Shown: piece by piece, positions 47,236 through 52,954 of the stretch
Layout of the letters: the number at the start of each line of letters is the position of its first letter
Position numbering within the stretch: the first letter of the stretch is position 1
NCBI GenBank assembly: GCA_965603825.1
Contig: CBFDEM010000020.1
Location: 1 to 64,000, forward strand
DNA: 64,000 nt
From: Blepharisma stoltei ATCC 30299
Lineage: Eukaryota; Protista; Ciliophora
Direction of reading: 5' to 3'
Notes under the pieces: generated by a model
The model's input: only the letters and a program-made list of their open reading frames with translations
Database searches by the model: none
What the model was told of the DNA's origin: nothing
Translations under genes and position numbers: made by a program

Positions 47236-47914
47236 TTAAAATTTCTCTGTGATTTTACTATAATTTCTTCTGATATTTCAAACAACTTCTTCTGATGTAT
47301 TTCTAAAAACGTCATTTATATTTTCTCCAGTTAACGCACTGACTTCCATATATATCGCTGCCCATTTTTCTGCTTTTTCTCTAGCTTCTTCTTCACTAAT
47401 CTCTCTCACCAAGTCCTTTTTATTCCCTAATAAGGCAAAAACTGTCTCTTTTGCAGCAAAATTTTTCGCTCTGCTAAATCAATAATCAACATGTTCAAAG
47501 GTTTCCCTATTCGATAAGTCAAATACTATTATAGCGATATCTTTATTCTTATATGGCTTTTGATTTTTTTTTACGAATGCTCTGATATTCTGAGCCAAAA
47601 TTGATATGAAAATTAATTGAATTTTATGCTTATGATTCCTTGATATTCCAAAAAAAATTAAAAATGCATAAGCATATATAGTATACCTGTGGAAGCTTGC
47701 CAAATCTTTCTGATCCACTTGTATCTCAGACCATAAGTCTGACGATAAATTCTTTAAAACGCTCAAATTTCATTGTGAAAGAAGGAGGCACGCAATTGTA
47801 AAAGCCAGGTCTGAAAGCTCCTTCATCATATCTAACAAATAAACTTGACTTTCCAACAGTAGCATCCCCAATTAAAACAGCTCTTATACAGTAGTCATAT
47901 TCTCAATCAGCCAT
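47236..47914 (-). CDS. Atypical Rab-like GTPase A, interrupted by a 127-bp TA-bounded insert
   Basis: EYDY, GDATVGKS, W(TGA)DTSGSERF, IVFDLS, GNKKDL and EVSALTGEN. The frame is fully open only after removing 47554-47680. No C-terminal Cys. Confidence 0.8.
47550..47680. mobile_element. IES-like insert (127 bp plus one TATA direct repeat)
   Basis: TATA direct repeats at 47550-47553 and 47677-47680; imperfect terminal inverted repeat TATATG(G)CTT; AT-rich; contains an in-frame stop and shifts the frame; absent from paralogues at 51639 and 52409. Confidence 0.7.
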
Positions 47915-47962
47915 ATAAATAATATTTATAACTCATTTCTTATCTCTTCTGTCATTATCTTA

Positions 47963-50896: not shown

Positions 50897-51576
50897 TTAA
50901 AATTTCTCTGTGATTTTACTATAATTTTTTCTGATGTTTCAGGCAGCTTCTTCTGATGTATTTCGAAAAACGTCATTTATATTTTCTCCAGTTAACGCAC
51001 TGACTTCCATATATATCGCTGCCCATTTTTCTGCTTTTTCTCTAGCTTCTTCTTCACTAATCTCTCTCATCAAGTCCTTTTTATTCCCTAATAAGGCAAA
51101 AACTGTCTCTTTTGCAGCAAAATTTTTCGCCCTGCTAAATCAATAATCAGCATGTTCAAAGGTTTTCCTATTCGATAAGTCAAATACTATTATAACAATA
51201 TCTTTATTTTCATATAACTTTGCATCCGTTTTATTCATGATCTAATATTCCGATTAAAAATAAGGTATGAAAATTAATTGAATTTTCATGCTTATGCTTC
51301 CTTGATATCCCAAAAAAAATTAAAAATGCATAATCATATATAGTAGACCTATGGAAGCTCGCCAAATCTTTCATATCCACTTGTGTTTCAGACCGTAATT
51401 CTGATAATAAATTCTTTAAAACGCTCAGATCTCATTGTAAAAGAAGGATGTGCACAATTGTAAAAGTCAGATCTGGAAGCTCCTTTATCATATCTATCAA
51501 ATAAACTTGATTTTCCAACAGTATAATCCTCAATTAAAGCAGCTCTTATACTGTAATCGTATTCTAAATCAGCCAT
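50897..51576 (-). pseudogene. Atypical Rab-like GTPase B (pseudogene) with a 128-bp insert
   Basis: Duplicate of gene A with a CAG-to-TAG nonsense change just before the insert, P-loop G-to-E (EDYTVGKS) and G3 D-to-N. Confidence 0.85.
51212..51342. mobile_element. IES-like insert, homologue of 47550-47680 (128 bp plus one TAT direct repeat)
   Basis: Same codon position (79) as in gene A; TAT direct repeats on the minus strand; removal gives VYYENKD. Confidence 0.65.
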
Positions 51577-51638
51577 ATAATGATTAATTTCTTATCTCTT
51601 CTGTCATTATCTTTCAAAAATAAAATTATTGTTATATC

Positions 51639-52187
51639 TTATTTTTTTATTAGTTTATCATAATTTCTTCGAATATTCTGAATTGCTTCTTCTGTATTTA
51701 TTCTAAAAGCTGTATGTATATTTTCTCCAGTTTTAGCACTAGTTTCTACATAAGTCACTGACATCATCCTTGCTTTTTGCCTTGCTTCTGCATCACTCAC
51801 TTCTCTTGGCAAATCATTTTTATTACCAATTAATACAAAAACTGTGCTTTTTTGAGTGTTTTTTTGAGCTTTAGTATGCCATAAATCAACATGATTAAAG
51901 GTTTCTCGACTTGATAAATCAAAGACTAGCATTATAATTTCTTTATCTAGAAAGCCAACCGTTGGGAGATCGTTATATCTCCTAGCTTTGCTTCCATCTC
52001 AGATCATCATCCTTACAAAACAATCATCAAACTGTTCATATTTGTTCATAAAAGAGCTTGGGAATAAATTTCAGTCATCAGGATAGAAAACGTTTTTCTC
52101 AAACCTTGTCATCAAGCTTGATTTACCGACATTGGTGTCTCCAACTATAATTATTCTTAGCAAATAATCATACTCCGAGTCTACCAT
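51639..52187 (-). CDS. Atypical Rab-like GTPase C (182 aa)
   Basis: EYDYLLRIIIVGDTNVGKSSL, IW(TGA)DGSKA, GNKNDL and ETSAKTGEN. No insert and no C-terminal Cys. Confidence 0.88.
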
Positions 52188-52408: not shown

Positions 52409-52954
52409 TTATTTTACCAATTTGTCATAATTATGTCTGATTCTCCAAACTAAGCTTTCTAAACAACTTCTAAAAGCGTAATTTACCTGATGCCCATATT
52501 TAGCACTAGTTTCGACATATAACATTCCTAGCATTAATGCCTTTTTTCAAGCCTCTTGATATCCGACCTCTCTTTCCAAGTCAGTTTTATTGCCAATTAG
52601 TAAAAAATTTGTATCTTTCGATGCATAATTTTTGGTTTGGGCTACCCAATAATCAATGCTATCAAAAGTGCTTCTTCTAGATAAGTCAAATACTATTATT
52701 ATAATTTCTTTATTTTTATAGCTCATGGGCCAAAAGGTTGCAATTCTTTCTATTCCTTTTCCTTTTCAAATCGTAACTTTCACAGAAAATTCATAAAAAT
52801 GTTCAAATTTTTCCACAAAAGACCGCTCTGGCCAATCTCAGTGATCAGGAAAGAAAACATTGTTCACAAACCTTATGAGTAGGCATGCTTTCCCAACATG
52901 CATATCTCCAATTACAAGGATATTTGCCAAATAATCATACTCCGAGTCTACCAT
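52409..52954 (-). CDS. Atypical Rab-like GTPase D (181 aa)
   Basis: Open with three TGA=W: GDMHVGKA, IWKGKG, VFDLS, GNKTDL and ETSAK. Missing from the ORF track. Confidence 0.85.

Follow-up and report, generated by a model that had tools for sequence, protein, structure and literature searches.

An IES-type insert kept in the somatic assembly within a Rab-like gene of the ciliate Blepharisma stoltei

Why should a Rab-like gene on a somatic chromosome of Blepharisma stoltei be interrupted by a segment that looks like an IES, and does the segment switch the gene, splice out of its transcript, or simply sit there? The locus lies in a 64,000-nucleotide stretch of contig CBFDEM010000020.1 (the window), which starts with telomere repeats (positions 1 to 300, CCCTAACA units). 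These cap a somatic contig of strain ATCC 30299, in agreement with the original prediction of a telomere-capped somatic chromosome. In the published somatic (MAC) genome of this strain, UGA encodes Trp and introns are tiny. The same code applies here, as in-frame TGA codons fall at conserved Trp positions of the Rab-like gene. The gene (copy 1) and two related genes nearby are laid out as follows.

47914 to 47236, minus strand: Rab-like copy 1, whole gene (ATG at 47914, TAA at 47238-47236)
47678 to 47914, minus strand: copy 1 before the insert, from ATG to Tyr79, with G1 (GDATVGKS) and G3 (WDTSGSE)
47677 to 47680, minus strand: left TATA of the terminal direct repeat
47550 to 47676, minus strand: 127-nt insert including the right TATA (47550-47553), AT rich, with stops in the exon-1 frame
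47236 to 47549, minus strand: copy 1 after the insert, from ..KNKD to TAA, with G4 (GNKKD) and G5 (SAL) and no C-terminal Cys
51639 to 52187, minus strand: insert-free Rab-like paralog of 182 aa (...WPMSYKNKE)
52409 to 52954, minus strand: insert-free Rab-like paralog of 181 aa (...PTVGFLDKE)

The two exon pieces of copy 1 were searched against Pfam separately, and the joined, insert-free protein was used for the frame check only. Both pieces matched the Ras family (PF00071): 47729-47902 with 22.8 bits (E value 7.7e-5; cutoff, 21.6) and 47281-47478 with 44.5 bits (E value 1.6e-11). The small-GTPase motifs GDATVGKS, DTSG, NKKD, and SAL are all present. With Ser in place of the catalytic Gln and no C-terminal Cys, the gene is called Rab-like.

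The predicted 127-bp, TATA-bounded interruption of this gene was confirmed. The two TATA repeats (47680-47677 and 47553-47550) are spaced 127 nt apart, and the coding strand at the insert reads CAG GTA TAC TATA TATGCTT ... AAGCCA TATA AG AAT. Cutting out the 127 nt in silico produced a 552-nt open frame of 183 codons (TGA read as Trp), reading ...ERFGKLPQVYYKNKD..., and the insert-free product aligned without gaps to the paralogs at 51639-52187 and 52409-52954. The expectation that deletion opens the frame at exactly paralog length was thus borne out. With the insert left in place, the exon-1 frame is stopped about 19 codons inside it. Because translation ends there, the somatic copy 1 as assembled is unable to encode the full GTPase.

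Several properties of the insert recall B. stoltei IESs, about three-quarters of which are TA bound. The repeats seen most often in these IESs are TA, TAT/ATA, and TATA; their ends share a weak consensus (TAT rrn ttt t), and about 70% of them lie within genes (Seah et al., 10.1101/2022.05.02.489906). At fixed points 127 nt apart, a 4-nt TA-containing direct repeat is found at 0.18% of window positions and a TA/TA pair at 0.7%. Against that background, a TATA repeat lying exactly at the homology-defined boundaries is beyond chance. Read inward, the right end of the insert fits the consensus (copy 1, TAT GGC TTT T; copy 2, a tandem copy described below, TAT AAC TTT G), and the left end matches it poorly. 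The imperfect inverted repeat that had been noted at the ends is there, in weak form (14 of 20 positions; shuffle P = 0.025). G+C content is 22.9% in the insert versus 31 to 38% in the exons. Neither the whole insert nor its left hairpin folded, as DNA, with a significant score (z between −0.1 and −1.9). In a search of the 41-Mb somatic assembly, the insert was found at just two homologous places, and an insert-free copy of the locus was not found.

The second of those places modifies the original prediction, which held the paralogs to be insert free; the insert of the second copy had been pointed out in a separate remark by the same reader of the window. This is correct for the 182-aa and 181-aa genes but not for the nearest paralog, copy 2, which carries a homologous insert.

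51576 to 50897, minus strand: copy 2, whole tandem copy
51340 to 51576, minus strand: copy 2 before the insert, with G1 broken (G16E), G3 broken (D64N), and TAG at codon 76 (51349-51351)
51212 to 51339, minus strand: homologous insert of copy 2, bounded by TAT repeats and 128 nt long, at the codon boundary that the copy-1 insert also occupies
50897 to 51211, minus strand: copy 2 after the insert, 95.6% identical to copy 1

Since the homologous insert of copy 2 sits at the same codon, the insertion predates the tandem duplication. The two inserts differ by about 19% overall, which is comparable to the synonymous divergence of exon 1 (dS = 0.25), so insert and duplication are of equal age. At 127 bp (copy 1) and 128 bp (copy 2), the inserts are inside the IES range (about 65 bp upward) and miss its published peaks.

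The two copies have diverged unevenly. An 80-nt patch that runs from the right-hand portion of the insert into the beginning of exon 2 (47531-47609) is 62 to 72% identical. Exon 2 beyond this patch is 95 to 100% identical, and the better-matching side of the insert is at 47610-47690. Identity between the inserts reaches 91% across the left 87 nt, above that of exon-1 synonymous sites, and no significant hairpin was found in this conserved left part to account for its conservation. The pattern may be a gene-conversion mosaic. Just upstream of both copies, 27 nt on the minus strand (47935-47961 and 51587-51613) are 100% identical and form the 5′ edge of a duplicated segment of about 880 bp. At copy 1, this stretch occupies most of the 48-bp gap to a protein-kinase gene transcribed in the opposite direction. 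It may be a promoter element common to both copies, or it may simply be the duplication boundary.

The defining trait of an IES is absence from somatic DNA and presence in the germline. A contig of GCA_914767885.1 (CAJZBQ010000020.1), reached via the annotated copy-2 protein, aligned to the window as the same sequence with about 10 extra blocks and is therefore the MAC+IES (germline-scaffolded) assembly of Seah et al. The following positions in the window correspond to blocks discussed here.

47523 to 47525, minus strand: TAT junction of a true 106-bp IES (MAC+IES assembly, L004 13785-13893)
about 42447: C-run IES of about 982 bp (L004 19069-20052)
about 55775: C-run IES of about 340 bp (L004 5047-5390)

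The 106-bp TAT-bounded IES belongs to the same exon as the insert, 27 bp downstream, and is present in the germline version and absent from somatic DNA. The 127-bp insert, by comparison of assembly consensus sequences, is the same in the MAC assembly as in the MAC+IES assembly (100% identity). The excision machinery thus acts on this exon, but in the assembly consensus the insert is still there, as the term "retained" in the original prediction implied. At copy 2, the site homologous to the 106-bp IES is intact and IES free, and the IES is therefore younger than the duplication. From this comparison, its presence in copy 1 alone would be a postduplication gain or, alternatively, would reflect a precise loss from copy 2.

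Ten true IESs were found within 18 kb, ranging from about 71 to 982 bp and bounded mostly by TA, TAT, TATA, or TAA. The insert had no significant similarity to any of these ten, the adjacent 106-bp IES included. Two of the germline IESs, those listed above as C-run IESs, have long runs of C (..GACCCCCCC..) at their ends in inverted orientation and probably belong to a repeat family; the nearby short IESs are AT rich instead.

Taken at face value, the sequence comparisons favor the reading that the insert is an old IES-type insertion that the soma of the reference strain does not remove, or removes poorly, to which we assign a probability of about 0.55. A short, AT-rich, transposon-like element would have entered a TA in the switch-II region of a germline Rab-like gene. 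Tandem duplication would have followed, with both daughter copies inheriting the insert. In the reference strain, the insert would go unremoved in macronuclear development, or would be removed from a minority of copies only. The younger 106-bp IES in the same exon is removed cleanly. Copy 2 has decayed further than copy 1. We infer that the insert started as an excisable IES and that excision has since been lost or become inefficient.

An IES-type origin, which is what "IES-like" claimed in the original prediction, appears well supported. It draws on a TATA repeat of one of the commonest published types, a length in the IES range, and the fit of the right end to the consensus; on the fact that precise removal restores paralog length and GT..AG pairs cannot; and on excision of a true IES 27 bp away. 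With the B. stoltei IESs described by Seah et al. (GCA_914767885.1), the insert shares its TATA repeat, weak inverted repeat, T-rich inward ends, low G+C content, single-copy status, intragenic position, IES-range size, and restoration of the frame upon conceptual precise removal. It differs from them in its presence in the somatic assembly, true IESs being germline limited, and in a length off the peaks. These two differences also count against a stuck IES, as do the poor left end and the lack of likeness to any neighboring IES.

The alternatives differ in what they require of copy 1, in which the insert is the sole defect and all G motifs are kept. With the 182-aa paralog as the outgroup, 3 residue changes map to the lineage of copy 1 and 11 plus a stop to that of copy 2 (P = 0.057). 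Pairwise dN/dS between the copies is 0.43 (Nei-Gojobori), and the synonymous excess was not significant when the observed transition bias was simulated (P = 0.18). Neutral change is expected to yield about 0.027 stops per substitution, so a neutral copy 1 could plausibly still be stop free. No indels separate the copies in 552 nt of exons versus seven events in about 335 nt of noncoding sequence; this contrast is weak evidence because indels prefer AT-rich runs. Purifying selection on copy 1 is thus only suggestive. The 3-versus-11 changes and the dN/dS of 0.43 nevertheless hint that the gene functioned while carrying the insert, which would make continued removal of the insert, from DNA or from RNA, likelier than a dead relic.

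These data bear first on the idea that the locus is a plain pseudogene, in which neither copy has functioned since the insertion of a transposon or MITE that was destined for the soma and was never an IES. The TA repeat would then be a target-site duplication of the Tc1/mariner type, a notion that suits the weak terminal inverted repeats, the somatic location of the insert in both copies, the decay of copy 2, and the low stop expectation for a neutral copy 1. The insert shows no sign of a mobile family, however, being confined to two homologous somatic places, and neither the indel-free exons nor the asymmetry of residue changes, with copy 1 conserved, is what a pair of dead copies would lead one to expect. 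We consider this explanation unlikely.

Rather unlikely, too, is the on/off switch of the original prediction: a live IES, variable or maternally controlled, that is still excised precisely in some somatic copies, clones, or strains, and whose retention in ATCC 30299 would silence the gene through its epigenetic state or through assortment. Such an element would account for the canonical Rab-like frame that precise TA-to-TA removal restores in copy 1, for the in-frame TAT-to-TAT removal still available in copy 2, which gives a product of equal length, and for the slower evolution of copy 1 with its full set of G motifs. IES excision in Blepharisma is a continuum, and assemblies conceal partly retained IESs (Seah et al., 10.1101/2022.05.02.489906), as a variable element would require; the 91% identity across the left 87 nt of the inserts could let one retention state serve both copies. 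Against this, only the insert-bearing form is in the assembly, the dead duplicate carries the same insert, the selection signal is not significant under the modeled transition bias, and homology-dependent maternal control is not reported for Blepharisma in the literature that we consulted.

The on/off switch has no direct support. The model for it is the mating-type switch of Paramecium tetraurelia, in which the mtA promoter is removed as an IES (context in PMC6182129 and PMC7900874). There, one germline locus undergoes alternative somatic rearrangement that decides expression, and the states, their maternal inheritance, and the phenotype have all been demonstrated; here the likeness is proposed from assembled sequence. 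It is very doubtful that excision is all or none between clonal lines, with maternally inherited retention and homology-dependent protection of both copies. Incompletely excised or retained IESs of Paramecium (PMC3698930, PMC6771405, and PMC8670300) offer another parallel, being likewise IES-type insertions in somatic coding sequence that can truncate the product. In Paramecium, retention is measured as the proportion of reads that keep the IES, and lines often differ in it, whereas the insert here is known as assembly consensus and is common to two old paralogs.

Removal might instead occur at the RNA level. The insert would then be an unusually long spliceosomal intron, possibly an IES turned intron, and the gene would work despite its somatic insert.

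47557 to 47686, minus strand: candidate 130-nt GT..AG intron (GT at 47686, AG at 47558-47557), product ..GKLPQ joined to PYKNKD..

The required GT and AG exist, their use preserves the frame, and both are conserved at the aligned positions of copy 2 (as a 131-nt option), even in the fast-diverging right part. An intron would also explain how copy 1 stays intact and slowly evolving with a permanently somatic insert. Three other GT..AG options that share the donor and keep the frame are 58, 97, and 139 nt long. The two modes of removal predict different transcript junctions, GTATACTATAAGAAT from excised DNA and CCACAG joined to CCATAT from the 130-nt intron. The spliced product, however, would be one residue shorter than every paralog, within a conserved helix, and no GT..AG pair restores paralog length. 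Copy 2 has C at donor position +3, and the TATA direct repeat at the homology-defined boundaries, which is no feature of introns, would go unexplained. Heterotrich tiny introns resemble the insert in that a frame-keeping GT..AG pair surrounds it, and they differ in size: 97% of Blepharisma introns are 15 to 16 nt long, and splicing efficiency drops with length (Singh et al., PMC9942806 supplement). The published pipeline took introns of 10 to 99 nt only, so a 130-nt intron was uncallable. Its silence is uninformative on this length and weakly against the 58- and 97-nt options, which its two-digit limit accepts. On balance, we regard an intron as quite unlikely.

Three deposited gene models cover the two copies.

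47236 to 47865, minus strand: official 209-aa model of copy 1, an uninterrupted ORF in the exon-2 frame that crosses the insert, with exon 1 out of frame
51349 to 51576, minus strand: official 75-aa model of copy 2
50897 to 51238, minus strand: official 113-aa model of copy 2, with its ATG start inside the insert

On the sequence, we judge these models to be wrong here, that of copy 1 as a wrong-frame read-through and those of copy 2 as a split gene. That the 209-aa protein, read straight across the insert (47865 to 47236), is the true product can hardly be credited: the frame is open for 209 codons with TGA as Trp and is the one deposited, but its first 100 or so residues are an out-of-frame Rab N terminus plus insert, a Pfam search with the 95-aa N-terminal piece returned no families, motifs G1 to G3 lie in another frame, and the equivalent frame of copy 2 is shut by several stops.

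Only two NCBI assemblies, both of this strain, contain the copy-2 protein and the neighboring WD40 protein. The sole Logan contig in the WD40 cluster (SRR24908292) is from another heterotrich species, with 76% nucleotide identity. It keeps the WD40-RCC1 gene order and has a coiled-coil gene in place of the Rab-like cluster, so the cluster is lineage specific. A metagenome scan with the exon-2 piece returned distant GTPases only (at most 57% identity), and an ortholog was not found in it.

Beyond the original prediction, the analysis adds the same-codon insert in copy 2, the true IES 27 bp away, and the artifactual nature of the 209-aa model. For annotation, the consequence is that the deposited 209-aa model is, in our judgment, wrong. 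A blind spot also came to light: introns of at least 100 nt are uncallable by the published pipeline and are bound to be missing from the official annotation of this genome. If the insert is simply stuck, it would add to the documented IES-type insertions that were spared elimination, here at the cost of one gene in a redundant cluster. The old retained insert and the young excised IES, 27 bp apart, would make a dated pair for the study of lost excision competence. If excision or splicing is variable, the locus could serve as a natural reporter, in an early-branching ciliate, of IES retention or of the change from IES to intron. Were excision in fact all or none between clonal lines, a single germline genotype would yield somatic lines that possess this Rab-like GTPase and others that lack it, the first heritable gene switch by excision outside the oligohymenophoreans.
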